64,000 nt of DNA, from the IMG/VR virus record IMGVR_UViG_3300023184_000024, positions 248,001 to 312,000 of that record; one strand, written 5' to 3'. Of this stretch, positions 2,884 through 60,309 are shown piece by piece. The position numbers were made by a program, and so were the translations under genes. How positions within the stretch are numbered: the first letter of the stretch is position 1; each line of letters begins with the position of its first letter. The notes under the pieces are model-generated. The model was not told the DNA's origin. It saw only the letters and a program-made list of their open reading frames with translations, and ran no database searches.

Positions 2884-3620
2884 TGACTTGTGATACACTG
2901 ATAGTTGGGTGTAGTTATATTGAAAATCTTTTTATACCGCCCGATCACAGGCCGTATCATAACAATATAATCAACTACAAAAAATACAACATAGTAGGCA
3001 CTTCAGGCAGTGGCAATACTGCCATTGCCGCCCGTGTACTGTACGAATGTGCAAAACATCAGTACAAAAAAGTCATTGTATTGTGGAGTGGTATTAATCG
3101 CATAGATTTGCCAGTGGGCTTAGATATACACAAAACATTTCCGTGTGATTCGGATGGCTACCCAACGTATACCTACTATACTGTGTTAGATCAAGTAGTT
3201 TGGTATCACTCAGGCGGCCATTCATTGTCGGGCACATCGGATGACTGCCCAGCAGAGATTAGAAAATTCTTTAAACTACAGTATCTGGGTGCAACTAAAA
3301 AATTTTTATCTGACTTGACATTGCAATCTGTGGTGTCTGTACAGAAATTCTTAGAAGCCAGTGGCATTGACTACAAAATGTCGTTCATCTACGATATTCA
3401 CAAACCCTACACCGAGTGGTATATTGAGCCCGGTTGTGGGTCAGTTGATGTCAACAGTAACTTTTATAGTTTGGTAAACTGGGAAAAACTGTCAAAACTA
3501 ACACCGTTTGAATGGTGCAGAATGAGATCCAAGTTCATGGACAACGATCAGTTTCATTGGAATTATTTGGGTGCAGTAAATTGGTTCAAAGAAGCATACA
3601 ATATAGATTTACTCTCTTGA
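2883..3620 (+). CDS. SGNH/GDSL-like protein (paralogue 1 of 4)
   Basis: IVGCSY, GSGN, LWSGINRID, C-terminal DQFH; TAATG overlap with gp13. Confidence 0.55.
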   Translation: MTCDTLIVGCSYIENLFIPPDHRPYHNNIINYKKYNIVGTSGSGNTAIAARVLYECAKHQYKKVIVLWSGINRIDLPVGLDIHKTFPCDSDGYPTYTYYTVLDQVVWYHSGGHSLSGTSDDCPAEIRKFFKLQYLGATKKFLSDLTLQSVVSVQKFLEASGIDYKMSFIYDIHKPYTEWYIEPGCGSVDVNSNFYSLVNWEKLSKLTPFEWCRMRSKFMDNDQFHWNYLGAVNWFKEAYNIDLLS

Positions 3621-3621
3621 C

Positions 3622-3650
3622 TAGACACAGCGTTTGTTTTTTAGTATAAT
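3622..3650 (+). promoter_or_regulatory. sigma70-type promoter
   Basis: TAGACA, N17, TATAAT, 5 nt before the ATG at 3656. Confidence 0.65.
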
Positions 3651-3655
3651 ATTGT

Positions 3656-4201
3656 ATGGACATAATGATTGATATTGAAACAGTTGGCACAGGACCCGAA
3701 GCCTGTATTTTAACCATTGCCGCCCAGACATTTGAACCACTGGAAACTGGCTACAACGAATTAAGCTACTATGCCAGAGTGGACTTCGAAAGCCAGCCAG
3801 GGCGCAACATTGAAGATGGGACTATTCAATGGTGGGCTACTCAACCGGCTGAAGCAAGAGAAGAAGCATTCAATGAAAAGGATCGCATTCCTTTGGGACA
3901 AGCACTTGAAGAGCTTGGCCGTATTATTTGGACTTGCAAACAAAGAACCAAAGACAACGCCGCTCGAATTTGGGCCAACGGTCCTACATTTGACATGAAT
4001 ATTTTAGAACACGCCTATAAAAGTTTTAAAATTCAACTACCTTGGCAGTATTATCGTGTAAGAGACGCTAGAACAATATATGGGCTCTGGCCCGACTTGC
4101 CAAAGTATCCAGCTAGCCATCATGCTTTAGAAGATTGTCGAAGACAAATTGACTTATTGCAAGCTACGCTAAAACATCTTGATGTTAAGGAATTGGCATG
4201 A
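3656..4201 (+). CDS. dexA: DEDDh 3'-5' exonuclease (T4 DexA-like)
   Basis: IMIDIET, WANGPTFD and HHALED motifs. Confidence 0.8.
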   Translation: MDIMIDIETVGTGPEACILTIAAQTFEPLETGYNELSYYARVDFESQPGRNIEDGTIQWWATQPAEAREEAFNEKDRIPLGQALEELGRIIWTCKQRTKDNAARIWANGPTFDMNILEHAYKSFKIQLPWQYYRVRDARTIYGLWPDLPKYPASHHALEDCRRQIDLLQATLKHLDVKELA

Positions 4202-5237: not shown

Positions 5238-8200
5238 ATGGCACTAGTATCACCTGGCGTAGAAGTAAGCGTAATAGACGAATCTAACTACATTCCAGCA
5301 TCCACCAATTCAGTCCCTTATATTCTGTTAGCAACAGCTCAAAACAAAATATCAGGTACCGGGGTAGGAGTTGCACCCGGAACGTTGGCAGTTAATGCCG
5401 GCAAGGTATATCTGGTAACAAGCCAGAGAGATCTTGCCGCAACGTTTGGCAACCCGTTCTTTTATAAGACATCTAACGGAGTACCAATCAACGGTTACGA
5501 ACTCAACGAATACGGGTTGCTTGCGGCTTATTCAGTGTTGGGCATCAGCAATCGTGCATATATCCAGCGAGCAGACATTGATTTATCAGAATTGACAGCA
5601 TCGCTGACTCGTCCAGTTGGCAGCCCAACTGCTAACAGCTATTGGCTCGATACTTCGACATCTATTTGGGGTATTTTACAGTGGAATGTTACCACTGGTG
5701 CTTTTACAACACAAACACCAATCGTGATTACATCAGCATCGCAATTAGATGCCGGCATGCCTAGTGTCAGCGTTGGCTCAATTGGAAGTTATGCAGTTGT
5801 TGCAACAAATTCTAGCAATCCAGTTTATTATAAAAATACAAACAATCAATGGGTACTAGTCGGCAGCGATGATTGGAAATCATCTTGGCCAACTATCCAG
5901 GGCAGTGAATCAATTGATGGCACACTTTATGCTGGCAACTATATTATTATTAACGGTACCACCGTGACAGTTCCTGCTGGCCCAGACAACACATTGCAAG
6001 GCCTAGTAGATGAAATCAACAATGCCAACATTTTAGGTGTCACAGCCGAGTACGACAGTAGCGATCGTTTGGTAATTTATGCAACCAGCGAAGCTACCAA
6101 TGACGGTTCAACTGCAGATGGCGGGATGGTTTCGATTGATCCTGCTAGCACAGGCGCTTTGTTGACTACATTAGGCATTGCTCCAGATAATTATTATGCT
6201 CCTGCATTGCAACAAAGTGCAAATTATACTAACCCACGTTGGAGAAGCACTGACAGTTTTCCTAAACCCACAGGATCTGTTTGGAACATGATCACACCAG
6301 TTAACTTGGGCGCCAACATTTCTGTGAAGAAATATGACGCAGTGTTGGGTGCTTATATAACTCAAAACGCACCAATTTACGAAAATGATCAAAGTGCCAA
6401 CAAGTCGATGGATCCTTCAGGTGGCGGAAAGAACATACCAACCGGTACATTGTATATTCAATATAATGTAAGCCCAGAATTGTCTGGCAGTATGTTGTAC
6501 AATAATACATTTACATTGAAAGTATTTGAAAGATTGACGTCAGGATCGACCATCATCACAGGTGACGATACAACTCCTATTTTTGTAAATGGAAATACAT
6601 TTTCTATTCAGGCCAGTGCTGCCAACAGCAATACATTAACTTCTGCAGTGACAGCGACCATGGGCGGCACAACAGCCGCAGACTTTGTGTCTGCTGTTTC
6701 TGCTGCCGGTGTTCCATATGTTTCGGCTGCTGTAAATTCAGATGGTTCAATAGCAATGACGCACAGCCAAGGTGGCGTAATCGCTATTAAGAATTTAACA
6801 GGCAGCCCCGTAACTGCGGCAGGTTTCAACACAGATGTAACTGGTGTAAGAGCTGGCTCCGGCAGTTTAAATGGCGCATTAATCTTATCAAACTGGGTAC
6901 CGTTGGATTATGTTGCACAATCAACCGCACCCGATTCTGATCCAGTAGATGGCAGATATTGGTATTATTCAGCCACAGATCAAGTTGACATTATGATCAA
7001 TAATGGGTCTGATTGGTTAGGTTATAAAAATGTCAGCAACGATGCTCGTGGTTACAACTTAACTGTTACTAACTCAACTGGTCCTATTGTTTCTGCATCA
7101 GAACCCACTGCTCAAACTGATAAAACTGATCTTGAGTATGGCGATTTATGGATTGACACCAGCAATCTTGAGCTGTACCCAGTAATCAAGCGTTGGGAAA
7201 ACATCAGTGGAGTTGATCAATGGGTCACCATCAACAACACAGATCAAACAACATCAAATGGTATTTTATTCGGCGATGCACGTTGGGCAACAAATGGTTA
7301 TACCAACCCTTCGTCAGACGCTATCCCATCAATTGTTAGTTTATTAACCAGCAATTACTTGGACATTGATGCTCCTAACGCATCTTTATATCCAGCTGGG
7401 ACATTGTTGTGGAATACACGCCGAAGCGGATTCAATGTTAAATCGTTCCAAGTCAACTACTTTAATGGAACAGATTTTTCTATAGATCCATATTCGTCGG
7501 CAACGACTTATGTGACCGGTGATAAAGTATTGTACAATGGTGTAATCTATGTTGCATTGAGTACAACACAAAGCAATTTACCAATTGATACAGATTACTG
7601 GGATCTGTTAGAAACCAATGCATGGGTAACAGCTTCTGGTAATCGTGCAGATGGTAGTCCGTACATGGGACGACAAGCACAACGTGCGTTGATTGTACAA
7701 GCATTGAAGTCTGCAATTGATACACAAGATACACTGCGCGAAGAACAAAATCAATTTAATTTAGTTGCTTGCCCTCAGTATCCAGAGTTGATGACAAACA
7801 TGGTTGCTTTAAACAACGAGCGCAACAACACAGCATTTGTCATTGGTGATACACCGTTGCGTTTACCTCCAGAAGGTGCTGAGATCATTGCGTGGTCTAC
7901 AGACAACAACGGTCTTGGCTACAAATCTGGTGATGGCTTAAATGTAGGCGATGCTTACCTTGGTACATTCTATCCAAGTTGCCGTACCACAGATTTGTCA
8001 GGTAGTCAAGTTGTTCAACCTCCAAGTCACATGATGCTACGAACAATTGTTCGGAGTGACGAAGTTGCGTTCCCTTGGTTAGCACCAGCAGGTGTGCGTA
8101 GAGGTGTAGTTGACAATGCTGAACAGTTGGGTTATGTGAATTCACAGACTGGCGAATTCATAACTATTGCAACAGGCCAAGGCCTTCGCGATGTTTTGTA

Positions 8201-8633
8201 TGAAAACAGGATCAATCCAATTACGTTTATTCCAGGTGTCGGAATTACCAACTATGGTAACAAAACAGAAGCAGGACAACCAAGTGCATTAGATCGCATC
8301 AACGTTGCACGTTTAGTTGCATTTATACGTGGTAGATTAGAAGAAATTGGCAAGACATTTGTGTTTGAACCAAACGATCAAATCACACGCAACGAAATTA
8401 GCAATGCCATTGATGGTTTAATGATTGATCTAGTTGCCAAACGTGGTATCTACGATTACCTGGTAGTTTGCGATGAAAGCAATAACACACCAGCACGTAT
8501 TGATAGAAACGAATTGTACGTTGACATTGCAATTGAGCCAGTGAAAGCAGTGGAATTTATCTATATCCCAATGCGTATTAAGAATACCGGAGAAATTGCA
8601 TCCGGACAAGTTGCTTCATCAGCAACAACATGA
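5238..8633 (+). CDS. gp18: Tail sheath protein (gp18-like) with large insertions, 1131 aa
   Basis: MALVSPGVEVSVIDES N-terminus; C-terminal FPWLAPAGVRRG, RINVARL, FVFEPND, CDESNNTPARIDRNELYVDIAIEP; TAAATA at 5203. Confidence 0.92.
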   Translation: MALVSPGVEVSVIDESNYIPASTNSVPYILLATAQNKISGTGVGVAPGTLAVNAGKVYLVTSQRDLAATFGNPFFYKTSNGVPINGYELNEYGLLAAYSVLGISNRAYIQRADIDLSELTASLTRPVGSPTANSYWLDTSTSIWGILQWNVTTGAFTTQTPIVITSASQLDAGMPSVSVGSIGSYAVVATNSSNPVYYKNTNNQWVLVGSDDWKSSWPTIQGSESIDGTLYAGNYIIINGTTVTVPAGPDNTLQGLVDEINNANILGVTAEYDSSDRLVIYATSEATNDGSTADGGMVSIDPASTGALLTTLGIAPDNYYAPALQQSANYTNPRWRSTDSFPKPTGSVWNMITPVNLGANISVKKYDAVLGAYITQNAPIYENDQSANKSMDPSGGGKNIPTGTLYIQYNVSPELSGSMLYNNTFTLKVFERLTSGSTIITGDDTTPIFVNGNTFSIQASAANSNTLTSAVTATMGGTTAADFVSAVSAAGVPYVSAAVNSDGSIAMTHSQGGVIAIKNLTGSPVTAAGFNTDVTGVRAGSGSLNGALILSNWVPLDYVAQSTAPDSDPVDGRYWYYSATDQVDIMINNGSDWLGYKNVSNDARGYNLTVTNSTGPIVSASEPTAQTDKTDLEYGDLWIDTSNLELYPVIKRWENISGVDQWVTINNTDQTTSNGILFGDARWATNGYTNPSSDAIPSIVSLLTSNYLDIDAPNASLYPAGTLLWNTRRSGFNVKSFQVNYFNGTDFSIDPYSSATTYVTGDKVLYNGVIYVALSTTQSNLPIDTDYWDLLETNAWVTASGNRADGSPYMGRQAQRALIVQALKSAIDTQDTLREEQNQFNLVACPQYPELMTNMVALNNERNNTAFVIGDTPLRLPPEGAEIIAWSTDNNGLGYKSGDGLNVGDAYLGTFYPSCRTTDLSGSQVVQPPSHMMLRTIVRSDEVAFPWLAPAGVRRGVVDNAEQLGYVNSQTGEFITIATGQGLRDVLYENRINPITFIPGVGITNYGNKTEAGQPSALDRINVARLVAFIRGRLEEIGKTFVFEPNDQITRNEISNAIDGLMIDLVAKRGIYDYLVVCDESNNTPARIDRNELYVDIAIEPVKAVEFIYIPMRIKNTGEIASGQVASSATT

Positions 8634-8649
8634 TAGCATTTAATGCACT

Positions 8650-8677
8650 AAAACGGGGTTTAAGGCCCCGTTTTTTT
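8650..8677 (+). terminator. Rho-independent terminator
   Basis: AAAACGGGG...CCCCGTTTT stem followed by a T-run; looks bidirectional. Confidence 0.85.
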
Positions 8678-8719
8678 GGTTTGAAAAAGACTAAATAATA
8701 ACATAAAGGAGATATACAC

Positions 8720-9337
8720 ATGGCCGTTTCATCACTAACCAGATTGACAGTGCCTTTGGCCAGCGATCAAAGCAATCCTACCCAAGGTCTGTTAATGCCC
8801 AAATTAAAATATCGTTTCCGTGCGATATTTGAAAACTTTGGTGTAGCAACACCGAGAACAGAATTGACAAAACAAGTAATTGATTTTACTCGTCCATCAG
8901 TTTCGTTTGAAGAAATACCTATCGAAATTTACAATAGCCGATTATACCTGGCTGGTAAGCACACATGGGAAGCACTCACAGTTAACCTTCGCGATGATGC
9001 ATCAGGACAAGTTGCACGTCTTGTTGGTGAACAATTACAAAAACAACTTGACTTCATGGAGCAAGCTTCGGCAGCGTCAGGCATTGATTACAAGTTTACC
9101 ACCAAGTGCGAAGTACTTGATGGTGGCAACGGTACTTCTACTCCTACAGTTTTAGAAACTTGGGAAATGTATGGTTGCTACTTGAGTAGTGTAAATTACA
9201 ATGACTTGAACTATGGTAGCAGTGAGCCTGTAACAATTACATTAAACATTCGATTCGATAATGCGTTACAAACTCCTATTGGATCTGGTGTAGGTGCTGA
9301 AGTAGCAAGGACTGTAAACGACGTGATCACAGGATAA
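8720..9337 (+). CDS. gp19: Tail tube protein (gp19-like)
   Basis: Follows the sheath; P.L.YRF, F.EI.I, GK.TWE.LT, W.MYGC, L.Y.SSE...I..D pattern; TAAATA at 8692 and AAGGAG RBS. Confidence 0.85.
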   Translation: MAVSSLTRLTVPLASDQSNPTQGLLMPKLKYRFRAIFENFGVATPRTELTKQVIDFTRPSVSFEEIPIEIYNSRLYLAGKHTWEALTVNLRDDASGQVARLVGEQLQKQLDFMEQASAASGIDYKFTTKCEVLDGGNGTSTPTVLETWEMYGCYLSSVNYNDLNYGSSEPVTITLNIRFDNALQTPIGSGVGAEVARTVNDVITG

Positions 9338-9344
9338 ACCTGTT

Positions 9345-10499
9345 ATGGCGTTTGGGCAGGATTTTCTTAAGGCCTTCTTTGGGAATGATTATCTCAAAGA
9401 TTATACGCATGCGAGCAAAACTTTTCGAACCGCTGGGTACGAAAATGCACCTCGCTACAAATTCCTTTTCCATGTGTACTTCAACATTAACACAAGTCAA
9501 GTGCCTGCCTTGCGAAATGTTTTTAGTACGCCCGAGACCTCAACAATCGGGCTACTAGTTAAAAACATCGAATTACCAAAATACAGAATCGAAACAGAAA
9601 CTCTTAATCAGTATAATAGAAAACGTATTATACAAAAAAAGATCAACTACGAACCAATAAACATTGCATTCCACGACGATGGCGGCGACTTAATACGTAC
9701 CATGTGGTATAACTATTACGCTTACTATTACAAAGATCCAAATCAACCGTACAGAGGACAAAGTGCCACCAATGGCGAAATGGGCATGAATGCTAATAGA
9801 ACACAAGGGTTTGATTATAATAATAGAGACATCTATTCCAATTCTAGATTTGTAAACGACTGGGGCTATGTAGGCGAAAGCTACAGTGACGGAACAAACG
9901 GAACCACTGGTAGCGTATCTGGCAAGCCACCATTTTTTAGAGACATTTCAATTTATGGATTTAACCAGCATAAATTTGTTGAATATGTTTTGATCAATCC
10001 AATGATCAATGAATGGCAACACGACACCTATGACTACAGTCAAGACTCTGGAGTCATGGAAAATAAAATGACAGTGAGTTATGAAACTGTGAAATATTAC
10101 AGTGGCGGCATAGGTGCTGTTCGGCCCGATACCAATGCACAAGGATTTGCTGACCCAAACTATTACGACCAGACCAAGAGCCCGTTGTCAAGACCCGGCG
10201 GTACACGAAGTATATTGGGTCAAGGCGGATTGTTGGATGCTGGTATTGGAATATATGAAGATTTGCAGACAGGCAGTGTGGCCGGAGTTGTCGGAGCAGT
10301 ACAGAAAGCTGGCACTGTTTACAATACCTTTAAAGGGGCTAACCTCAAGGCTGTGGTAGGTGAAGAGGCAAATCAAGCATTAAAAGGTGTATTACGTAAC
10401 AATATTCCGGCGGCAGCAAGAAATACATCAATTGTCAATGGACAAACAACGCAACAATTGTTAAATTTTCCAGTGTTCAATAAACCACCAAAAGGCTGA
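9345..10499 (+). CDS. Tail-tube-fold baseplate protein (gp48/gp54-like)
   Basis: ELPKY...LNQYNRKRI.QKKINYEPINIAFHDD resembles the tube fold; position directly after the tube gene. Confidence 0.55.
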   Translation: MAFGQDFLKAFFGNDYLKDYTHASKTFRTAGYENAPRYKFLFHVYFNINTSQVPALRNVFSTPETSTIGLLVKNIELPKYRIETETLNQYNRKRIIQKKINYEPINIAFHDDGGDLIRTMWYNYYAYYYKDPNQPYRGQSATNGEMGMNANRTQGFDYNNRDIYSNSRFVNDWGYVGESYSDGTNGTTGSVSGKPPFFRDISIYGFNQHKFVEYVLINPMINEWQHDTYDYSQDSGVMENKMTVSYETVKYYSGGIGAVRPDTNAQGFADPNYYDQTKSPLSRPGGTRSILGQGGLLDAGIGIYEDLQTGSVAGVVGAVQKAGTVYNTFKGANLKAVVGEEANQALKGVLRNNIPAAARNTSIVNGQTTQQLLNFPVFNKPPKG

Positions 10500-28680: not shown

Positions 28681-29439
28681 ATGCAAAATATTGTAATTGT
28701 AACCGGCGGGTTTGACCCCATCCATTCTGGACATATCTCTTATCTTAATCATGCTGATCACCTAGGCGATTACCTAGTGGTGGGATTAAATTCCGACGCA
28801 TGGCTTGCCCGTAAAAAAGGCCGCCCTTTTATGCCATGGCGTGAACGTATGACGGTGTTGGGCAACCTGCACATGGTTGACGAAGTAATTGAGTTCAACG
28901 ACGACGATGGGTCTAGTGTTGATGCCATACGTCAAGTCCGAGAAAAATATCCAGATGCACGTATTATCTTTGCCAATGGCGGAGATAGAACCAAGGACAA
29001 CATTCCAGAAATGGTGTTCGATGATGTGGAGTTTGTGTTTGGTGTTGGAGGAGAAGATAAAGCCAATTCCTCGTCCTGGATTTTAGAAGATTGGAAAAAG
29101 CCCCGAACAACTCGTGCATGGGGTTACTATCGTGTGCTACACGAAGTAGGCACTCATACCAAACTCAAAGAACTAACAGTAACACCCAAGACATGCTTGA
29201 GCATGCAACGTCACGAACACCGTGCTGAGTTTTGGTTTGTAGCCGAAGGTGAGGCTGCAGTCTATACCTTGGATTCGTCGAGCGACCATGACCTAGTCGG
29301 GCACTACAAACTGCATGAGCACATTTTTATTAACTTAGGGCAATGGCACATGTTGTGCAATGAAACTGACCAACCACTTAGATTAATTGAAATACAATAC
29401 GGCAATAATTGTATAGAAGAAGACATCGAACGTCAATGA
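28681..29439 (+). CDS. Cytidylyltransferase (RfaE-II/TagD-like) fused to a cupin (PMI type II-like)
   Basis: VTGGFDPIHSGH (HxGH), GLNSD, ANGGDR; C-terminal LSMQRHEHRAEFW...IEIQYG...EEDIER. Confidence 0.88.
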   Translation: MQNIVIVTGGFDPIHSGHISYLNHADHLGDYLVVGLNSDAWLARKKGRPFMPWRERMTVLGNLHMVDEVIEFNDDDGSSVDAIRQVREKYPDARIIFANGGDRTKDNIPEMVFDDVEFVFGVGGEDKANSSSWILEDWKKPRTTRAWGYYRVLHEVGTHTKLKELTVTPKTCLSMQRHEHRAEFWFVAEGEAAVYTLDSSSDHDLVGHYKLHEHIFINLGQWHMLCNETDQPLRLIEIQYGNNCIEEDIERQ

Positions 29440-46975: not shown

Positions 46976-47703
46976 AATTTAAAAAAATTGTGGGGTTCGG
47001 TGACAGTTGGATGTGGGGCGACGAGTTACTTGACCCAAAACTGCTCACACACGAGCGTGCACACCCAGTTCTAATAGAAAATGTTCCTTATCGTGAAAGC
47101 AATTGTTTTCTTGGACAATTGGGCACATACTACGGAGTACCAACAGAAAACTTTGGTATACCGGGCGGTAGTTTACAAAGTACCATCTGGACTTATCTAT
47201 GGTGGCGCCAACACGAAACTGTGCCACTTGACCAGTGTGTTGTACTAGTAGGACTAACTGATCCCAATAGACAAACATTTTACAATCCCAATCATGTGGC
47301 TTACTCTAACGACCCGCCGTGGAACCGATTTGTTCACAGTTCCTGGATTCACAGTGGTGGAACAACACCGGGAGATCCCTGGACACAAATGGTCAAGTCA
47401 CACATGGTGTTGTCCGACTGCGATGCTGTGCACAAATTGAATTACCAACAAACTGTGCTGTTTTTTCAAGGACAGGCCCAATATGAAACCGGACCGTTGT
47501 TGCAATTTAACACCATGTTTGGTATATTAGACATGCCTTGCTCAACTCTGATTTGGCCAACCCAGTCATTGGATCATGTGGTACGATCGGAGCCGGGCAA
47601 CGCCGACTTGTTTGCGCCAATGGGTCACCCAAATGAAAAAGGACATGCGGTTCTCCGAGATCGCTTGATTACTGAGATTGATCGTGCTATAATAGCACAA
47701 TGA
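46972..47703 (+). CDS. SGNH/GDSL-like protein (paralogue 3 of 4)
   Basis: GFGDSWMWG, PGGS, GLTDPNR, GHPNEKGH. Confidence 0.6.
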   Translation: MKFKKIVGFGDSWMWGDELLDPKLLTHERAHPVLIENVPYRESNCFLGQLGTYYGVPTENFGIPGGSLQSTIWTYLWWRQHETVPLDQCVVLVGLTDPNRQTFYNPNHVAYSNDPPWNRFVHSSWIHSGGTTPGDPWTQMVKSHMVLSDCDAVHKLNYQQTVLFFQGQAQYETGPLLQFNTMFGILDMPCSTLIWPTQSLDHVVRSEPGNADLFAPMGHPNEKGHAVLRDRLITEIDRAIIAQ

Positions 47704-48680
47704 TTGATCTGATCCAATACCTGCCAGCAAAACGTAAACAAACGCCATCAGGGTGGATCAGTTTCAACGCAGTTTGTTGCACCCATAATGGTAATAGTTT
47801 AGACAAGCGTCAACGTGGTGGCCTTAAGGCCACAGACCAGGGCTGGAGTTATCATTGCTTTAATTGTGGGTACACCGCTAGTTTTATACTTGGTCGCCAG
47901 CTGTCACTTAAAGCCCGTAGACTCCTGACTTGGCTGGGCGTACCAGATGCGGAAATTGATTATCTCAATTTAGAAAGCCTCAAGCATCGTAACATACACG
48001 GCATACTAGAAGATCGCAACAAAACATTCAACACTTTGGCAGCAATTGAGTTTGAAGAATGTGACTTGCCGCCCTATGCTGAACTGCTAACAGACGAAGG
48101 CGACTACAGAGACTATGTGCGTAGTCGACATGTGCCCAACGACTTTCCTGTCATGGCACAGATGCAAAATGATGGTATCCATTGGACAAGGCCGCACGTA
48201 ATAATTCCATTTACTCACAATGACCACATTGTGGGTTATACATGTAGATTTCTTGACAACAAAACGCCTAAGTACATTTCCAACAGTCAGCCTAACTATG
48301 TGTTTGGCACAGACCTGCAACACACTGATTGGGAACATGTACTGGTAATGGAAGGTATATTTGATGCGCTCTGCATTGGCGGCCTAGCAGTGATGCACAA
48401 TGCCATCAGTGATGGGCAAGCAAGACTCATACGTAGTCTAGGTAGGCCAGTTACTGTAGTGCCTGATCAAGACCGGGCAGGATTAGAGTTAATTGATCGT
48501 GCAGTGGAACTAGGCTGGGCAGTTAGTATCCCTGTGTGGCCCAGCCATATCAAAGACGTAAATGATGCTGTGATTGAATACGGTCGGTTGGGGGCCTTAC
48601 TAACTATAATGCAGGCAAGGGAAACCAGTCGTATCAAGATTGAATTAAAAAGGAAGCACCTTGAAAAAAGAATACAATAA
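47700..48680 (+). CDS. gp61: DNA primase (gp61/DnaG-like)
   Basis: Zn-binding CC.H...HCFNC; KY.NS; TOPRIM MEGIFDA, PDQDRAG, KDVND. Confidence 0.88.
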   Translation: MIDLIQYLPAKRKQTPSGWISFNAVCCTHNGNSLDKRQRGGLKATDQGWSYHCFNCGYTASFILGRQLSLKARRLLTWLGVPDAEIDYLNLESLKHRNIHGILEDRNKTFNTLAAIEFEECDLPPYAELLTDEGDYRDYVRSRHVPNDFPVMAQMQNDGIHWTRPHVIIPFTHNDHIVGYTCRFLDNKTPKYISNSQPNYVFGTDLQHTDWEHVLVMEGIFDALCIGGLAVMHNAISDGQARLIRSLGRPVTVVPDQDRAGLELIDRAVELGWAVSIPVWPSHIKDVNDAVIEYGRLGALLTIMQARETSRIKIELKRKHLEKRIQ

Positions 48681-49386
48681 ACTTTGGGTGCTTGGCGACA
48701 GCTTTACAACACCGGGTTATTGTGTTGAACCAAAAGATAGCTTTTGGGGGCTAACAGCACAACATTTAAACGTCAAGCAAATAATGAATTGTTCTTGGGT
48801 GGGCAATAGCTTTGGCAGTGTACAGCACATGCTAATCAATCAACAGTTGCAATTTAACTGGAAACATGATTTTTTAATAATTGGAATTCCGCCATTGGAA
48901 AGACTCACAGTGTTTGACAATTACAAAGATACCAGACACAATGGCCATTGCATTGACCCGGCAACATGGGATAACAGTTTGTTTCAAATTGATTGTCACA
49001 CCGGGTTAGACATCATTCGCGGGCATGACGCACAAATCATGGTAATCCATCAGGATCGCAGTTGGGTTGAAACACAGACTTTGAATTCTATATTTTTATT
49101 AACTTCTTGGTTAGACTCAGTGGATGCTAATTATGTAATAGTTAACTTGAGTAAGTCATTGAACGAACATTGTACGTGGAACCCCAATGCGTTTGTACTG
49201 CCGTATGTTGCAGAACATTCAAAATGTATTGTGTTTCGTGATACGTATTACGGAGTTAATTTTGAAAAAATTAAACCAGTGGATTTTGATCAGTATAGTT
49301 GGTCGGGGCATCACGGCCCAGCTGGGAATCAAAACTTTTTTGAGAATTCTCTATTGCCCACATTAAAAAGGAATAAATTTTGTTAA
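48661..49386 (+). CDS. SGNH/GDSL-like protein (paralogue 4 of 4)
   Basis: VLGDSFT, GNSFG, GIPPLER, GHHGPAGN. Confidence 0.6.
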   Translation: MKKEYNKLWVLGDSFTTPGYCVEPKDSFWGLTAQHLNVKQIMNCSWVGNSFGSVQHMLINQQLQFNWKHDFLIIGIPPLERLTVFDNYKDTRHNGHCIDPATWDNSLFQIDCHTGLDIIRGHDAQIMVIHQDRSWVETQTLNSIFLLTSWLDSVDANYVIVNLSKSLNEHCTWNPNAFVLPYVAEHSKCIVFRDTYYGVNFEKIKPVDFDQYSWSGHHGPAGNQNFFENSLLPTLKRNKFC

Positions 49387-50861
49387 AAGAATATGGACTT
49401 GATGTCCAACGTTTGTTTTTAGAAATGATGTTAGAAGATGCACAAAGTTATGTGCGTGTTCAGAACATCTACAACCCTGCAAATTTTGACAAGAGCCTTA
49501 GACCTGCTGCCGAATTTTTCAAAGAACACAGCGACAAACATAAAACATTGCCGGACCGTAATCAAATCTCTGCCACAACCGGAATCAAACTTGCACCAGT
49601 TCCTGATTTAAATGATGGTCACTATGATTGGTTCATGGAAGAGTTTGAAGCTTTTACACGCAGGCAAGAACTTGAACGAGCAATTTTAAAAGCCGCTGAT
49701 CTACTTGAAAAAGGAGAATTTGAGCCAGTTGAAAAGTTAATCAAAGATGCTGTACAGATTAGTCTAACCAAGGACATGGGCACAGACTACTTTGCTGACC
49801 CTGCTGGCCGTATCAACAAATACTTCAACAGTGGCGGGCAAGTCAGCACAGGCTGGCCACAATTGGACAAATTATTGTATGGTGGATTCTCTCGTGGAGA
49901 GCTTAATATTTTTGCAGGCGGTTCGGGGTCAGGCAAAAGCTTGGTCATGATGAACATTGCACTGAGTTGGTTGCAATCTGGCTTAAGTGGTGTATACATC
50001 ACATTAGAATTGAGCGAAGAGTTGACTAGTTTGCGCACAGACGCAATGTTAACCAGTATGAGTACCAAAGAAATTCGCAGAGACATTGAAACCACAGAAC
50101 TCAAAGTCAAATTGATTTCCAAGAAATCAGGGCAGTATCGCGTCAAGGGACTGCCAGCACAAAGTAATATCAATGATATTAGAAGTTACCTAAAAGAAGT
50201 ACAAATACAAACAGGCATCAAAGTCGACTTTGTCATGGTTGACTACCTTGATTTGTTAATGCCAGTGAGCGCAAAAGTTAGTCCCAATGACTTGTTTGTC
50301 AAAGACAAGTATGTGAGTGAGGAATTGCGTAACCTGTCCAAAGAACTCGGAGTGCTACTAGTTACAGCAAGTCAGTTAAACCGTAGTGCAGTTGAGGAAA
50401 TTGAATTTGACCATAGTCATATCAGCGGCGGCATTAGTAAAATTAACACTGCTGATAATGTGTTTGGTATTCTTACCAGCAGACAAATGCGTGAGCGAGG
50501 CAAATATCAAATTCAGTGCATGAAGTCACGTAGCAGTACTGGGGTTGGCCAAAAAATTGATCTAGAGTACAACATTGAAACTATGCGTATCACAGACCCG
50601 GGCATAGATGAAAATGCATATAATAGACCACAGAGTTCAATTATGGACAGTATCAAGGCCAAGAGTCAGGCCAGACAGGCCGATGAACTTGAAGGCAACG
50701 CTTCAAAAAGTATCACATGGGAAAAACCAACGGGAACACCTGCCTGGGATTACATGTCGGGCGGCAAAGAATTAAAGCCAGAGGTCGCAGGAAAAATTCC
50801 AGCCGAAGTACAAAGCGCCAAACTCAAACAATTATTAAGTCAAATTAAACCAACAACTTGA
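49380..50861 (+). CDS. gp41: Replicative DNA helicase (gp41/DnaB-like)
   Basis: STGW..LD, AGGSGSGKS, TLELSE, VDYLDL, ASQLNRS, KSR. Confidence 0.92.
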   Translation: MLKEYGLDVQRLFLEMMLEDAQSYVRVQNIYNPANFDKSLRPAAEFFKEHSDKHKTLPDRNQISATTGIKLAPVPDLNDGHYDWFMEEFEAFTRRQELERAILKAADLLEKGEFEPVEKLIKDAVQISLTKDMGTDYFADPAGRINKYFNSGGQVSTGWPQLDKLLYGGFSRGELNIFAGGSGSGKSLVMMNIALSWLQSGLSGVYITLELSEELTSLRTDAMLTSMSTKEIRRDIETTELKVKLISKKSGQYRVKGLPAQSNINDIRSYLKEVQIQTGIKVDFVMVDYLDLLMPVSAKVSPNDLFVKDKYVSEELRNLSKELGVLLVTASQLNRSAVEEIEFDHSHISGGISKINTADNVFGILTSRQMRERGKYQIQCMKSRSSTGVGQKIDLEYNIETMRITDPGIDENAYNRPQSSIMDSIKAKSQARQADELEGNASKSITWEKPTGTPAWDYMSGGKELKPEVAGKIPAEVQSAKLKQLLSQIKPTT

Positions 50862-51898: not shown

Positions 51899-51947
51899 TA
51901 CTCAATAGCCAAAATCCGCTAAATAATTCAAAGGCCAATATCACAAA

Positions 51948-52208
51948 ATGCAAAAAAAGACTCGCAGTATTTTAGAAGAGCTTGATTCTGTATACGATGC
52001 CCACAATAAAAACAGGGATCGTCAATACATCATTGAAAGTCGTGCTAGCAATGCAATTGCTTCCGCTGTTCGTGTGGTGGAACAAATTGAATCTAGTTAT
52101 ACGCCGGATCAAGCTGAAATACTGGTGCGTAAATTGTTGAATGCAATACGTGATAAAGATCCTAACAAGTTTATGAGAACGTTAAGGCGATCAAATGCAG
52201 ATATATGA
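51948..52208 (+). CDS. Hypothetical late protein
   Basis: TAAATA at 51920; contains YIIES. Confidence 0.75.
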   Translation: MQKKTRSILEELDSVYDAHNKNRDRQYIIESRASNAIASAVRVVEQIESSYTPDQAEILVRKLLNAIRDKDPNKFMRTLRRSNADI

Positions 52209-52872
52209 TATTACCAATAGAAAACAACAGTTAACTGAAGCCAGCTTTACAGATTATGTAAAGGCTGCGTTTACCAAAGATCCCAACATGGCAAACTTAC
52301 CCTTGGATCAACGTGCCGCTGCCATGATGAAAGACACAGCCATGCAAAATGTAGCTAAACTTGCGCTACAACAATGGCAATCCAAAGTGCTGACACTGAT
52401 TCGTGCAAATCAAAACATGCCAATCACTGACCGTGAATACACTGATAACCTCAAAGATTTTATTGAAAAAACTCTGTTGCAAAAACCATTGACCACGCTA
52501 GATCAGCTCAGTCGACAACGCCTGGGTGTACAGATCAACAATGTATTGGCCAGTCGCAATGACCCTAAAAAACTGCAACAAACATTCCAAGAATTAGCGG
52601 TCAACACAGCGGCCGCACGTCAAGACCCAACAAGGGTGGGACGACAGTACGCACAGGCTGCCGCACAAGCGCCCACAGGCTCGGCTCAAGCCGGCAGTGC
52701 TCAACAAACATCTCCGCTGATTAAAAGATTCATGCAATCCACAGTCAATGCATCACAGCTGGCAGGACTACAACAATTTCTAGCACAAAACGTACAAGGC
52801 GGCATTGTTCGCAGTACTGGCAATGCCGTGGTAGATGCATTTATCAATCATTTGGGTGTTAAAACAAGATGA
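52195..52872 (+). CDS. Putative internal head protein (Q/A-rich)
   Basis: MQIYDITNRKQQLTEA N-terminus (L-x-E). Confidence 0.6.
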   Translation: MQIYDITNRKQQLTEASFTDYVKAAFTKDPNMANLPLDQRAAAMMKDTAMQNVAKLALQQWQSKVLTLIRANQNMPITDREYTDNLKDFIEKTLLQKPLTTLDQLSRQRLGVQINNVLASRNDPKKLQQTFQELAVNTAAARQDPTRVGRQYAQAAAQAPTGSAQAGSAQQTSPLIKRFMQSTVNASQLAGLQQFLAQNVQGGIVRSTGNAVVDAFINHLGVKTR

Positions 52873-54821
52873 AGCTAACTGAAGGCGGCAATGTATTCAA
52901 AGATGCACAAGGAAAACCTTTAACACAGCGTATCAACAAGGCTGATGTTCCTGCCACTATTAAATGGATTGAAGGAGTATCGGGTGTTGATTTTAGCGCA
53001 GAAATTGACCCAGCCACAAAAACTCCAGCCAAGTGGTTGGGCAGTACAGGCAAAGCTGCCAGCAGTGGCGACTTAGATCTTGCAGTGGATCTCAGCCAGG
53101 TAAGCAAAGAAGCCTTGGCTGCAAAATTAACTCAGTACATACAAAGCCAAGGATTAGACCCACGTGAATGGGTGGTTAAAAAAGGTGAAGTGCATTTAAA
53201 AACGCCCATCGCTGGTGATCCTAAAAAAGGTTACGTACAAACAGACTTTATGTTTTTCCCTAACTTAGACTGGGGACAATTCTTTTATGCTGGCGGCACA
53301 GACAGCGCCTACAAAGGTGTGTATAGAAATATCTTAATGAGCTCGATTGCCAAGCAACTGGGACTCAAAGTTGGTGCCAATGGCATGATTAGTCGCACTA
53401 CAAATCAACTGGTCAACGGTGGTATGGATCCTGATTATGTGGCCAGTGTGTTGCTGGGCAAAGGTCATGACCGTAAGAGTCTAAAGAATGTTGAAACCAT
53501 ATACCAGAATCTAGCCAAAGATCCAAACCGTGATGCTAAACTAGCAGACTTCCGCGAATATCTAGCTAGGGAAGGACTGCAGGAACCAGGACAAGTGCAA
53601 GAAAGCGAAGTTGGGTTCATGGCACGCTTGCGTGATAGAATTGTCAATCAAGGTTATCATATCATCATTGAAGACGAAGCGCCAGCAAAGAAAAAAGATC
53701 CAAGAATCCCGCATCCTGAAGATGCGTTCTTCATGGGCGGAAGTGCAGTCGCCAACAAGGCCATACGAGATCTCGAAGGAGCCATTGCCAGTGCTGGCAA
53801 AACTACTATTAAGTGGGATGGTAAACCTGCGCTGATTTGGGGCAGAATGCCCAATGGTCAACTAGCAGTCATGGACAAGTACATGTTTGATGCCAAGTAT
53901 CCAGCACAGAGTCCCGAAGATTGGATCAAGTATGATCAACAAAAAAAATCTGGTAATCTAAGAACTGACTTGTACCCTAAAATCAAAGCCATATGGTCTG
54001 GCCTGGATGCTGCCACAGTGGGTCCCGGATTCTACTGGGGTGATTTGATGTGGGCCGGGGAACTACAACCACAAGGTGGCAAGTACGTGTTCAAACCCAA
54101 CCTTGTACAATATTCAATACCAGCCAACAGCGAACTCGGGCAAACCATACCCGGCAAAACTGGTGGCATTGTAGTGCATCAACAATTTGCTAACTTGGGT
54201 GATCAAACAGCCCAAACTTGGAATGGTCAAGGACTACAGAACGTCCGTGGTGGTGTTGACATTATTAGGCCCAACATTGGTATTTCGTTTACATTAAAAG
54301 CACCAGCCAATTTAATTGCTGCCGCTAAAAAAGCAGTCAGCACTTATGGTGCGGCTGTAGATCAGTTATTGAATTCTTTGCCGGCCAGTACACGAGCACA
54401 AATGCAAACGTATTTTAACCAACGCATAATCGGTGGTACAACATTGAGCATGCCCAATTGGTTAAAAACCAAAGCCAGTGCTCGACAATACAGCGAGCTA
54501 GTAACCGGCAACCCTGATGTCAACGGACAGTACAATGCCGAAACTGGCAACATACCTGGAAAATTGTACACGTTAGATGCCAACAATAAACCAGTTCCTA
54601 GTCCTGCACATCTTGGATTGTTGGCAATCTGGACCTCAATTTATAATTTAAAGTTGGACTTGGCACAACAGTTGGAACAACAAGTGCAGGGACTTGAACA
54701 AAGTACAGCAGGGCAGGCCGAGGGCGAAGGATTTGTTGTACCTACCCCAACTGGATTAGTCAAGCTGGTGAACCGCGGAGTGTTTTCAGCAGGAAACGCC
54801 CAGCAAAACAATCCCAAGTAA
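52869..54821 (+). CDS. Fusion of a pol-beta-type nucleotidyltransferase and a KxDG ligase-like domain, 650 aa
   Basis: N-terminal LGSTGK...SGDLD (G58-S59, D68, D70) and QTDF (D126); C-terminal IKWDGKP (K315), WGDLMW, EGEGFVV, VKLVNR; MKLTE start and VQES/IIED linker. Confidence 0.6.
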   Translation: MKLTEGGNVFKDAQGKPLTQRINKADVPATIKWIEGVSGVDFSAEIDPATKTPAKWLGSTGKAASSGDLDLAVDLSQVSKEALAAKLTQYIQSQGLDPREWVVKKGEVHLKTPIAGDPKKGYVQTDFMFFPNLDWGQFFYAGGTDSAYKGVYRNILMSSIAKQLGLKVGANGMISRTTNQLVNGGMDPDYVASVLLGKGHDRKSLKNVETIYQNLAKDPNRDAKLADFREYLAREGLQEPGQVQESEVGFMARLRDRIVNQGYHIIIEDEAPAKKKDPRIPHPEDAFFMGGSAVANKAIRDLEGAIASAGKTTIKWDGKPALIWGRMPNGQLAVMDKYMFDAKYPAQSPEDWIKYDQQKKSGNLRTDLYPKIKAIWSGLDAATVGPGFYWGDLMWAGELQPQGGKYVFKPNLVQYSIPANSELGQTIPGKTGGIVVHQQFANLGDQTAQTWNGQGLQNVRGGVDIIRPNIGISFTLKAPANLIAAAKKAVSTYGAAVDQLLNSLPASTRAQMQTYFNQRIIGGTTLSMPNWLKTKASARQYSELVTGNPDVNGQYNAETGNIPGKLYTLDANNKPVPSPAHLGLLAIWTSIYNLKLDLAQQLEQQVQGLEQSTAGQAEGEGFVVPTPTGLVKLVNRGVFSAGNAQQNNPK

Positions 54822-54888
54822 CCGTTTTTTTGTGAATTGACTAAATAAAAGTAGGCCCAAAAGGGCCACTAACTTAGGAGATTCTAAA

Positions 54889-55353
54889 ATGGCATATTTT
54901 CCACCCTTTAATGGTGACGCACAACCAGTATTTGCAATGGACATCAACAATGGTCCACAAACTGGTAACATTGGTTCCACAGCTGCCTTGGTGCAGATGG
55001 ACGGCCCCAAGCTTGACTTTTTCAAAGTAATTGTGCAAAACGGTTCTAACCAAGCAATCGATTTGCGCACACAATTGGGTTCTTACAGTGCCGGCGTGTT
55101 TACGCCTGGTGTTGTGGTGCAACTCAACCAAGCTATTCAACGTACAGCAACTATTGCCAAGTACCAAGTCGAAGGCGATGCAACTGGTCAAATCAGCTAT
55201 GCTGTGTACCCACAAGGTGCATGGACAGCCGCTACTCTTGACGCAGCCTTGAAGGCTCTAGGTAACGTTCAGATTACAGCCAGCGATGGTACAGTGACTG
55301 GCGTTAATGTGTCTGGCACAGACGCTACAGACCCAGGCTTCAAACTAGCTTAA
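54889..55353 (+). CDS. Probable abundant virion protein (capsid decoration-like)
   Basis: Stand-alone unit: TAAATA at 54842, 5' hairpin GGCCC-AAAA-GGGCC, AGGAGA RBS, own terminator. Confidence 0.55.
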   Translation: MAYFPPFNGDAQPVFAMDINNGPQTGNIGSTAALVQMDGPKLDFFKVIVQNGSNQAIDLRTQLGSYSAGVFTPGVVVQLNQAIQRTATIAKYQVEGDATGQISYAVYPQGAWTAATLDAALKALGNVQITASDGTVTGVNVSGTDATDPGFKLA

Positions 55354-59609: not shown

Positions 59610-60002
59610 ATGTCATACTCAGAAAAAGTTATTGACCACTATGAAAATCCCAGGAATGTCGGATCTTTTGACAAGAGTGATACTGATATTGGTACTGGTA
59701 TGGTTGGCGCACCTGCTTGCGGCGATGTAATGAAATTACAAATAAAGGTGGACAATGTTACAGGTATTATTACAGATGCAAAATTTAAAACGTATGGCTG
59801 CGGATCGGCTATTGCGAGTTCGAGCCTCATCACAGAATGGGTCAAAGGAAAAACCATTGACGAAGCCGGATCAATCAAAAACTCCGAAATTGCCGAAGAA
59901 CTAGCGTTACCCCCAGTTAAGATACATTGTAGCATATTAGCAGAAGATGCCATCAAAGCCGCAGTAGCAGACTACAAACTACGTCATGATATCGGTAACT
60001 GA
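59610..60002 (+). CDS. iscU: Fe-S cluster scaffold IscU
   Basis: YSEKVIDHYENPRNVG, GAPACGDVM, YGCGSAIASSS, LPPVKIHCS. Confidence 0.95.
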   Translation: MSYSEKVIDHYENPRNVGSFDKSDTDIGTGMVGAPACGDVMKLQIKVDNVTGIITDAKFKTYGCGSAIASSSLITEWVKGKTIDEAGSIKNSEIAEELALPPVKIHCSILAEDAIKAAVADYKLRHDIGN

Positions 60003-60309
60003 AAAAGCCGCATGCCGGATTAAAACAGCATTAGCAAAAAGAGGCCAAGGCCTAGGCATACAAGTTGGAGTTAAAACCACTGGATGCTCAGGACTTGCGT
60101 ATGTGTTAGAGTATGTGGATAACCCTAATTTACATTGTGTTCAGCACTATGACAGCAATGGTGTACGAGTGTTTATAGATCCTAAAAATCGTCCTTACCT
60201 TGAAGGAATGACCATTGATTTTGTACGCAATGGTCTTAATGAAGGGTTTGAATTTGTTAACCCCAATGAACGCGATCGATGTGGTTGCGGAGAAAGTTTC
60301 AGAGTTTAA
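59986..60309 (+). CDS. iscA: Fe-S cluster carrier IscA
   Basis: GVKTTGCSGLAY, IDF...G..EGF.F.NPN, CGCGESF. Confidence 0.95.
   Translation: MISVTEKAACRIKTALAKRGQGLGIQVGVKTTGCSGLAYVLEYVDNPNLHCVQHYDSNGVRVFIDPKNRPYLEGMTIDFVRNGLNEGFEFVNPNERDRCGCGESFRV

Follow-up and report, generated by a model that had tools for sequence, protein, structure and literature searches.

A predicted fusion of a minimal family X DNA polymerase and a ligase-like enzyme in a jumbo phage

Within the analyzed window (64,000 nucleotides, positions 248,001 to 312,000 of IMG/VR record IMGVR_UViG_3300023184_000024), a unit of three genes on the plus strand follows the primase and DnaB-type helicase genes of a 352-kb marine-type jumbo phage. 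A CTAAATA motif resembling late promoters of T4 (51919–51925, +) is located 22 nt before the first gene of the unit, and an NTAAATA motif is kept at that place in all seven related phages examined. The same class of motif lies 23–36 nt before the tail sheath and tail tube genes of this phage, and ATAAATA is enriched 15-fold upstream of genes. The exact T4 late promoter, TATAAATA, is not enriched in the window, but the looser NTAAATA is, and sigma-70-type promoters and terminators around the third gene do not exceed chance. A second CTAAATA motif followed by a GGCCC-AAAA-GGGCC stem-loop (54841–54867, +) heads the next gene (154 aa, 54889–55353), an arrangement that is also conserved in seven related phages. 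The original prediction that the unit belongs to a late-type run is therefore borne out.

The first gene (51948–52208, +) encodes an 86-aa basic helical protein that is the constant upstream partner of the fusion gene. In all seven related metagenomic loci that were compared (designated L007–L009 and L016–L019), this gene lies directly upstream of, or overlaps, the fusion gene or the optional middle gene, and its product has 57–70% identity. Homologues in Phosso and PA5oct are located after the helicase gene, and the corresponding family, PHROG 11854, is labelled "virion structural protein." Complex prediction of this protein with the fusion protein gave no answer, which is evidence neither way. 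The middle gene (52195–52872, +) encodes a 225-aa Q/A-rich protein and is optional: a gene of 165–246 aa is present at this place in L007, L009, L018, and L019 and absent in L016 and L017. No family was found for it, and a search of the ESM Atlas gave no lead.

The third gene (52869–54821, +) is a 650-aa ORF that starts with ATG, encodes a protein beginning with MKLTE, and is translationally coupled, as its ATG overlaps the TGA stop of the upstream 225-aa ORF in the sequence ATGA. The original prediction described a pol-beta superfamily signature in the first half of the protein and the covalent nucleotidyltransferase motifs KWDG, WGDLM, EGFVV, and VKLVNR in the second half, and this observation is confirmed. 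In an alignment of 35 full-length homologues at 45–92% identity, G58, S59, T60, G61, S66, G67, D68, D70, and D126 of the N-domain and K315, W316, D317, G318, D392 (in WGDLM), E620 and G621 (in EGFVV), and K632, V634, and R636 (in VKLVNR) of the C-domain are invariant. When 12 stand-alone N proteins (47 sequences in total) and 32 stand-alone C proteins (67 sequences in total) are added, G58, G61, S66, G67, D68, D70, and D126 and K315, D317, G318, D392, E620, G621, and K632 remain invariant, which is far beyond chance.

The N-domain (aa 1–236; 52869–53576, +) is predicted to form the palm and thumb of a minimal family X DNA polymerase (PolX), with catalytic Asp codons at 53070–53072 (D68), 53076–53078 (D70), and 53244–53246 (D126). 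The model has a pLDDT of 90.6. In a PDB-wide VIA search, the top ten hits are all PolX, with Z scores of 7.7–10.7 over 153–177 residues, including Pol beta (Z 10.7) and African swine fever virus (ASFV) Pol X (Z 9.5 over 158 of 176 residues). In contrast, TUTases, PAP, CD-NTases, CCA enzymes, and MenT score Z 4.0–6.2 over ∼85 residues and align only over model residues 23–138, corresponding to the palm; OAS likewise matches far worse than PolX does. The palm superposes on those of Pol beta, lambda, and mu, and model residues 2/11–209 align with Pol beta residues 102/139–335, through to its C-terminus, over 164 residues at Z 10.7–10.8, indicating a PolX-type thumb directly after the palm. The 8-kDa (dRP lyase) domain and the helix-hairpin-helix fingers are absent, because only about 57 residues precede the GS motif and alignments start at Pol beta residue ∼102–142. 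ASFV Pol X shows the same lack, so their absence does not bar membership of the minimal subgroup. The assignment is based on structure and conserved residues alone, as no Pfam PolX model hit at E up to 1 and a profile of 47 sequences searched against all PDB sequences found no PolX. The suggestion that the N-domain could be of the RNA-tailing, cyclic-nucleotide synthase, or AMPylase kind is not supported.

A linker (aa 237–275; 53577–53693, +) separates the two domains. It consists of two disordered stretches that carry LQE, VQE, and IIE and flank a conserved helix (FMARLRDRIVNQG); pLDDT is low at residues 243–245 and 266–275. The VQES (243–246) and IIED (266–269) sequences that were originally noted as joining the domains are present and lie in these low-confidence segments.

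The C-domain (aa 276–650; 53694–54821, +) matches Pfam DUF6267 (E 4.6e-28) and is predicted to have the nucleotidyltransferase fold of ATP-dependent RNA/DNA ligases (model pLDDT 92.6). The codons of K315, E620, and K632 are at 53811–53813, 54726–54728, and 54762–54764, respectively. K315 lies in a loop before a strand, D392 lies in a strand, E620 and G621 lie at the start of a strand, and K632 lies in the next strand, 12 residues on; the mapping of motifs III, IV, and V rests on order, spacing, and secondary structure. Support for the fold is moderate. In a second VIA comparison, all top 50 chains are RNA or DNA ligases, at Z 5.5–7.3 over 161–205 aligned residues, and the best is NgrRnl (Z 7.3 over 185 aa). 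The same families are the only hits in the wide search that are not helical bundles, whereas Foldseek E-values are weak (0.08–0.5). The protein ends 18 residues after K632, where the model shows only one helix, so there is no C-terminal OB domain with motif VI, and the protein should not be filed as a canonical DNA ligase or a capping enzyme. Naegleria NgrRnl (Rnl5, PDB 5cot/6vt3), T4 Rnl1 and Rnl2, Trl1, and REL1, which are nick-sealing RNA ligases without an OB domain, are the best structural matches (Z 6.2–7.3 over 173–205 residues) and share the KxDG, EG, and K motifs in the same order, and the phage protein likewise ends soon after motif V. The C-domain differs from them in a ∼125-aa helical insert between motifs III and IV (about aa 480–603), in a conserved H-P-E-D block before motif I, and in its accessory domains, and there is no sequence-profile similarity. 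Searches of Pfam, PHROGs, and NCBIfam gave only DUF6267 and an unnamed PHROG, single-sequence and profile searches of all PDB sequences gave nothing relevant, and hhalign of the C-domain profile against the phage's own DNA ligase gave nothing. Language-model features do point to RNA-ligase families as the nearest named ESM Atlas clusters (PF09414, PF09511, and PF17720; scores of 0.70–0.77), but this is a lead only.

The two modules also occur apart. About 3,125 clusters at 50% identity match the two-module profile, and among the 150 best representatives the architectures are N-C (31), C-N (4), HUP-N-C (7), N-C-HUP (11), and C-HUP (3), plus singles, where HUP is our label for an HxGH nucleotidyltransferase module. 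The HUP gene lies next to DUF6267 in cyanophage P-HM1 and in Melnitz. Domain permutation of this type identifies the fusion as a pathway fusion, and the polyprotein that was originally proposed is not needed to explain it. The HxGH module is the commonest fusion partner and has weak likeness to NMNAT/PPAT, and one family member is fused to an Acb1-like domain. These associations raise the possibility that the modules do not act on polynucleotides and instead make or recycle a dinucleotide or nucleotide cofactor or signal, for example one related to NAD, possibly as a counter-defense. We consider this very unlikely because both catalytic modules have the shapes of enzymes that act on polynucleotide ends, CD-NTases and OAS are poor matches, and the HxGH orthologue in this genome (63411–64469 of the genome) sits among DnaJ, ClpB-like, and radical-SAM genes rather than NAD salvage genes.

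The genomic position of the fusion gene is conserved. In this phage and in the seven related metagenomic loci, the gene lies just after the primase and DnaB-type helicase genes, and cyanophage P-HM1, Melnitz, PA5oct, Phosso, and Atu_ph07 carry the ligase-like or PolX-like module in the same position; Atu_ph07 and Phosso have both PolX-like and ligase-like genes. Among neighbors in these phages, the 361-aa protein of Melnitz is not a homologue of the N-domain. Phosso gene 446 showed no BLAST similarity, but it and PA5oct gp256 carry KxDG and EGxV motifs, and gp256 gives a weak HMM hit. We considered whether the fusion might be the DNA ligase that T4 phages of the cyanophage type appear to lack but rejected this for this phage because a canonical ATP-dependent DNA ligase (PF01068) is encoded at positions 321655–323028 of the genome. 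No AP endonuclease (Nfo- or Xth-type) and no Ku, as potential partners in base excision or end joining, was found in the genome.

The interpretation offered with the original prediction, a capsid-packaged polyprotein of two enzymes, is partly supported. A two-enzyme fusion of a pol-beta-fold nucleotidyltransferase and a KxDG covalent nucleotidyltransferase of the ligase type, in a late-type and translationally coupled unit, is supported. We suggest, with moderate confidence, that the gene encodes a bifunctional enzyme that repairs breaks in nucleic acid. Structure prediction, fold comparison, and residue conservation show a minimal PolX palm and thumb with the GS...GDxD...D carboxylate triad, and the nucleotidyltransferase domain of an ATP-dependent polynucleotide ligase with K315 as the presumed AMP acceptor. 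The activities, by contrast, are inferred, as are the substrate and the timing: the polymerase module would extend a 3'-OH across a short gap and the ligase module would then seal the remaining nick. The most likely substrate is the phage's own DNA, with gaps and nicks left by replication, recombination, damage, or host nucleases, from late infection onwards, because the gene lies behind a conserved late-type promoter motif and next to the primase/helicase genes. In this view, the enzyme works within a wider module set that includes the conserved 86-aa partner and the HxGH nucleotidyltransferase encoded elsewhere in this genome. Rare fusions of family members to HAD (NT5C-like) and 2H (Acb1-like) phosphoesterases fit end-healing. 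However, the ligase module is closer in shape to RNA ligases than to DNA ligases, its fold match is only middling, no sequence or profile method links either domain to PolX or ligase families, and the presence of a canonical DNA ligase means that sealing DNA nicks is not an obvious unmet need. The lack of any AP endonuclease or Ku hit in the genome also counts against this reading. Cyanophages keep the ligase-like and HxGH modules without the PolX module, so the core activity may not need a polymerase, and this reading leaves the role of the HxGH module unexplained.

There is precedent for pairing these activities. [quoted passage not shown] PgVPolX has the full Pol beta core with the 8-kDa dRP-lyase domain and a LigA-type ligase recognizable by sequence, whereas the phage protein has only palm and thumb, no LigA-type domain by Pfam, and a Rnl-shaped DUF6267 domain, and neither half is detectable by sequence profiles. 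The host is also a bacterium rather than an alga. The resemblance is in architecture and logic, not homology of the ligase half. ASFV Pol X (174 aa, PDB 5hr9) is likewise a minimal viral repair polymerase of palm and thumb that works with a ligase, and model residues 19–208 align with the whole of it, but sequence identity is only about 14%, the ASFV polymerase and ligase are separate proteins, and the ASFV ligase is a DNA ligase with extra domains. Bacterial LigD joins polymerase, phosphoesterase, and ligase for NHEJ, its modules also occur separately and in different orders, and its polymerase and ligase cooperate at breaks. Its polymerase, however, belongs to the archaeo-eukaryotic primase family, its ligase has an OB domain, and it works with Ku.

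Alternatively, the protein could repair or remodel RNA ends, with the pol-beta-fold module adding nucleotides to RNA 3' ends and the Rnl-like module joining RNA ends, for example those of tRNAs or mRNAs cut by host ribonuclease defenses, or nicks in RNA/DNA hybrids such as primer junctions. The ligase module is nearest in shape and language-model features to RNA ligases, including NgrRnl, T4 Rnl1, Rnl3, Trl1, and REL1, and lacks the OB domain that DNA ligases use. One family member is fused to a 2H phosphoesterase and two to HAD phosphatases, the phage carries 29 tRNAs and a tmRNA, and some PolX enzymes, Pol mu and TdT, accept ribonucleotides. Nevertheless, we regard this as doubtful. The N-module carries the PolX-specific thumb, which reads a templated base pair, and RNA-specific nucleotidyltransferases match only the palm. 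No polynucleotide kinase is fused in any of the 61 extra regions scanned, no polynucleotide kinase/phosphatase for anticodon-nuclease repair passed its cut-off in this genome, and the conserved position is beside DNA replication genes, not tRNA genes.

The remaining part of the original prediction, that the protein is made late, cut by the prohead protease into two enzymes, and ejected with the DNA to act before phage gene expression starts, for example on the incoming genome or on host-cut nucleic acids, is neither shown nor excluded, and we consider it unlikely. The genome has a gene for a T4 gp21-type protease (Peptidase_S77) at positions 224622–225053 of the genome. The only four [LIV]xE sites in the protein lie at residue 3 and in the linker, against about 3.5 expected in the domain cores (P about 0.02), and they are conserved in 27–35 of 35 homologues; those at 3, 243, and 266, which would allow cuts after E5, E245, and/or E268, are kept in 29–35 of 35 and lie in disordered segments. 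In addition, the conserved late-type motif and the coupling to a small protein whose PHROG is labelled virion structural are consistent with packaging, and in PA5oct the genes after the homologue of this small protein were detected in virions by mass spectrometry. ASFV virions are said to carry Pol X and ligase in a similar way. However, PA5oct gp256, the distant ligase-like homologue in the same gene position, is not flagged among the 93 virion proteins found in that phage although two neighboring genes are, and DUF6267 genes in cyanophage records are annotated as hypothetical while other genes in those records are marked as virion structural. The depletion of [LIV]xE in domain cores is seen in the close clade only and disappears in the more distant half of the family, so it is not a family-wide signature of exposure to a protease. 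E5 belongs to an invariant EGGNVFK block of the folded domain, which is internal when other domains precede it. The linker helix and the "hhhE" site that follows it are also kept in stand-alone C proteins, where no domains need separating.

A broader and unlikely possibility is that the PolX-like, DUF6267 ligase-like, and HxGH modules together form a previously unrecognized, phage-wide break-repair system, running from jumbo phages to the conserved gene set of T4-like cyanophages. In this lineage, it would be made late, cut at the conserved [LIV]xE linker sites by the prohead protease, and carried in the capsid, so that the incoming genome could be patched or host nicking defenses undone before any phage gene is expressed. 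The HxGH module would supply NAD+ or remove the 5'-adenylate left by failed ligation.

A 2022 review of phage DNA polymerases names only ASFV Pol X as the viral example of family X (PMC8775771), whereas in the family described here a predicted minimal PolX is widespread in phages. The family is very large and uncharacterized, and DUF6267 does not appear in any searchable paper. The assignment suggests a testable function for a gene present in many T4-like cyanophages, labelled T4-GC 71 in P-HM1, and the family offers a new, compact predicted polymerase–ligase pair and a ligase type without an OB domain for enzymology and biotechnology. It also raises the question of how big phages keep very long genomes free of gaps and nicks before packaging or after entry.

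The ORF at window 52869-54821 (+) encodes a 650-aa protein that starts MKLTE, and its ATG overlaps the TGA stop of the upstream 225-aa ORF as ATGA. That ORF in turn overlaps an 86-aa ORF by 14 nt. A word-indexed search found 3,781 homologues. In an alignment of 35 full-length homologues (45-92% identity), every residue named in the original prediction is invariant, including G58, S59, T60, G61, S66, G67, D68, D70, and D126 in the N-domain and K315, W316, D317, G318, D392, E620, G621, K632, V634, and R636 in the C-domain. The core residues remain invariant when stand-alone N proteins (47 sequences) and stand-alone C proteins (67 sequences) are added. The features originally described at this gene are confirmed.

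Sequence methods are nearly silent on the identity of the two domains. Pfam recognizes only DUF6267, over residues 281-643 (E 4.6e-28), PHROGs gives an unnamed family, and NCBIfam gives nothing. Single-sequence and profile searches of all PDB sequences find no polymerase or ligase, and no paper in the library searched mentions DUF6267.

Structure prediction and fold comparison identify the N-domain as a predicted minimal family X DNA polymerase (PolX). An AlphaFold2 model of residues 1-272, built on 47 sequences, has a mean pLDDT of 90.6. Against the PDB, Foldseek returned 114 hits at E of 0.001 or better, and the 50 listed are all Pol beta, lambda, mu, or Thermus PolX. In a search of 48,161 PDB representatives that is independent of Foldseek, the first ten places all go to family X polymerases with 153-177 aligned residues: Pol beta (Z 10.7), Pol lambda (9.7), Thermus PolX (9.6), African swine fever virus (ASFV) Pol X (9.5, 158 of its 176 residues), Leishmania Pol beta (9.4), TdT (9.0), Pol mu (8.5), and Deinococcus PolX (7.7). 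A clear step follows, as TUTases, CutA, Trf4, GLD-2, poly(A) polymerase, CD-NTases, OAS, CCA-adding enzymes, MenT, and aminoglycoside NTases score Z 4.0-6.2 and align over only ∼80-98 residues (one outlier, NF90-NF45, aligns 144 at an rmsd of 8.8 Å). For nearly all of these, the match stops at or before model residue ∼150, that is, the palm alone. In contrast, the alignment with Pol beta runs from its residue 102/139 to its C-terminus at 335, which is the palm plus the thumb. Comparison to AlphaFold-Swiss-Prot gives the same order, with PolX or TdT as the top 22 hits and HESO1, Cid1, CdnC, and CCA1 appearing only at E of 0.013 or worse. Among viral models, the nearest named ones are giant-virus PolX proteins and the entomopoxvirus AP-endonuclease-PolX fusion. 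The local sequence GSTGKAASSGDLDLAV resembles the PolX triphosphate/metal motif of Pol beta, which we consider only a lead. The 8-kDa lyase domain and the fingers are absent, as in ASFV Pol X. RNA tailing, cyclic-nucleotide synthesis, and AMPylation, the activities originally proposed for this domain, are much less likely than templated gap filling.

The C-domain is predicted to be a ligase-type nucleotidyltransferase without an OB domain. The model of residues 242-650, built on 67 sequences, has a mean pLDDT of 92.6. Foldseek hits are weak (E 0.08-0.5) but are mostly DNA ligases I and IV, archaeal ligases, and a tRNA ligase. In the second-look VIA search, all 50 listed chains are RNA or DNA ligases, with NgrRnl at Z 7.3 over 185 residues, T4 Rnl1, Rnl3, Trl1, and REL1 at 6.2-6.6, and DNA ligases at 5.5-5.8. 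In the wide search, the same families are the only hits that are not generic helical bundles. When DUF6267 clusters are excluded, the nearest named clusters by language-model features are all RNA-ligase families. The invariant residues sit where ligase motifs should: K315 is in a loop before a strand, D392 is in a strand, and E620-G621 and K632 are on the two strands of a hairpin, 12 residues apart. The protein ends 18 residues after K632, so there is no OB domain or motif VI, and a helical insert of about 125 residues lies between motifs III and IV. We regard this fold assignment as moderately strong, because the match is middling in Z but consistent across methods and backed by the motif pattern.

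The distribution of the two halves suggests that they are modules of one pathway, without the need to invoke the polyprotein originally proposed. A profile search of 1.84 billion representative proteins found 3,125 matches. Domain mapping of the best 150 revealed C alone in 38, N-C in 31, N alone in 15, N-C-HUP in 11, HUP-N-C in 7, C-N in 4, C-HUP in 3, C-N-HUP in 1, and HUP-N in 1, where HUP is our label for a third module, a divergent HxGH nucleotidyltransferase with the motif GxFKPxHxGH. The HUP module is found in at least 31 of the 61 extra regions, and its likeness to NMN or phosphopantetheine adenylyltransferases is weak and below the family cut-offs. In cyanophage P-HM1 and in Melnitz, the DUF6267 gene lies beside or near a gene of this HUP family. 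The phage studied here has a stand-alone orthologue far away, at genome 63411-64469 (6412-7470 of L020, a locus from the same genome; E 2e-22), and a 542-aa ORF with no family match overlaps its end. In the same locus, a DnaJ-type co-chaperone and a ClpB-like double-AAA ATPase are encoded side by side (genome 57624-60743; L020 625-3744). Two further cytidylyltransferase-like genes are present, at genome 48661-49464 and window 28681-29439, of which the first also has a weak P-loop (AAA_33) match that suggests a NadR-like kinase/adenylyltransferase. Rarer fusion partners are HAD (NT5C-like) phosphatases, one 2H (Acb1-like) domain, DUF5661, and an amidoligase, and no kinase was seen.

The fusion gene lies beside replication genes. 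The window is bases 248001-312000 of a 352,754-bp phage genome with direct terminal repeats. In it, a primase (window 47700-48680) and a DnaB-type helicase (window 49380-50861) lie upstream of the fusion gene, and tail sheath, tail tube, large terminase, and gp32-type SSB genes are elsewhere in the window. Seven related metagenomic loci keep the order of helicase ... small protein, optional 165-246-aa gene, and fusion gene. The small protein is 57-70% identical across these loci and is always directly upstream. Several relatives also have radical-SAM genes between the helicase gene and the cassette, and two adjacent ORFs at window 59610-60309 look like the Fe-S cluster assembly proteins IscU and IscA, the matching genes of which carry Pfam NifU_N and Fe-S_biosyn in related loci. 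Distant jumbo phages keep the same position after the helicase. Phosso and Atu_ph07 have a small protein (homology is shown for Phosso; a gene of similar size, 83 aa, sits at that place in Atu_ph07), a ∼240-aa protein, a 324-411-aa protein shown to be ligase-like only in Phosso, and a separate PolX-like protein. PA5oct has the small protein and a ligase-like gp256 with KIDG and EGYV motifs. Both gp256 (8119-9459 of the PA5oct locus L006) and Phosso gene 446 (2806-4041 of the Phosso locus L002) are annotated as hypothetical yet carry KxDG, EGxV, and K-x-V-x-K motifs in ligase order in the same post-helicase position, so they are probably very divergent relatives of the DUF6267 module. The genome also has a canonical ATP-dependent DNA ligase and the fusion is therefore not the replicative ligase by default. 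No Nfo-type or Xth-type AP endonuclease and no Ku was found in the genome, and no polynucleotide kinase passed its cut-off. A cluster of 29 tRNA genes plus a tmRNA gene with the tag ANDEQFALAA is located outside the window, at genome (G000) 120386-137133.

Promoter-like motifs suggest that expression of the unit is likely late. CTAAATA lies 22 nt before the ATG of the 86-aa gene, and in all seven related loci an NTAAATA motif stands at the same place within otherwise diverged spacers. A second copy heads the next gene: at window 54841-55353, a CTAAATA motif, a GGCCC-AAAA-GGGCC stem-loop, and a strong Shine-Dalgarno sequence precede a 154-aa ORF (MAYFPPFNGD...) that matches no family. The whole arrangement is conserved in 7 related phages and looks like a highly expressed late gene. 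Across the genome, two promoter-like word classes are enriched upstream of genes, the sigma-70-like GGTTGAC / TGCTATAAT and the T4-late-like NTAAATA, with ATAAATA enriched 15-fold. NTAAATA lies 20-62 nt upstream of 39 of the 419 ORFs called, and the motif class lies 23-36 nt before the tail sheath and tail tube genes and before several very large ORFs. It resembles the T4 late promoter TATAAATA. Nevertheless, read-through from the replication genes upstream is not excluded, because no terminator-like site lies between them and the unit.

The original prediction also held that the protein is packaged in the capsid and split by the prohead protease. Consistent with this, the genome has a Peptidase_S77 (gp21-like) gene, and the protein has only four [LIV]xE sites, at residues 3, 237, 243, and 266, none of which is in the domain cores, where about 3.5 are expected (P about 0.02). 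Sites 3, 243, and 266 are conserved in 35, 29, and 34 of 35 homologues, respectively, and these three lie in poorly ordered segments. In addition, the PHROG of the small partner is labelled virion structural, and two PA5oct neighbours were found in virions by MS. Conversely, the core depletion vanishes in the distant half of the family, E5 belongs to the invariant EGGNVFK block and becomes internal when other domains precede it, and the hhhE element is also kept in stand-alone C proteins. PA5oct gp256 is not among the flagged virion proteins, although 93 were detected, and cyanophage DUF6267 genes are annotated only as hypothetical. We consider packaging unlikely. Overall, the original interpretation is partly supported.

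The analyses show a PolX-type active site and thumb and a ligase-type active site, both under strong conservation, in two modules linked by fusion in all orders and by gene position beside the replication genes. The activities themselves are inferred: the polymerase would fill short gaps from a 3'-OH, and the ligase module, adenylylated on K315, would seal the nick. The substrate is most likely phage DNA late in infection, for example gaps and nicks in replicated or recombined concatemers, or damage. The closest worked example is PgVPolX, in which a PolX-ligase fusion fills and seals a gap in vitro (PMC5537341), and ASFV Pol X with its ligase and bacterial LigD are similar in logic. However, because the ligase module looks more like nick-sealing RNA ligases, a ribonucleotide-containing or hybrid nick is a serious alternative, as is RNA repair.

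Polymerase-ligase fusions and minimal viral PolX enzymes are already known. But a 2022 review of phage DNA polymerases lists only ASFV as the viral example of family X, and our literature searches found no paper on phage PolX or on DUF6267. What is new is the occurrence of such a predicted fusion in phages, an OB-less DUF6267 ligase type, a three-module system with an HxGH transferase, the constant small partner, and the late-type promoter.
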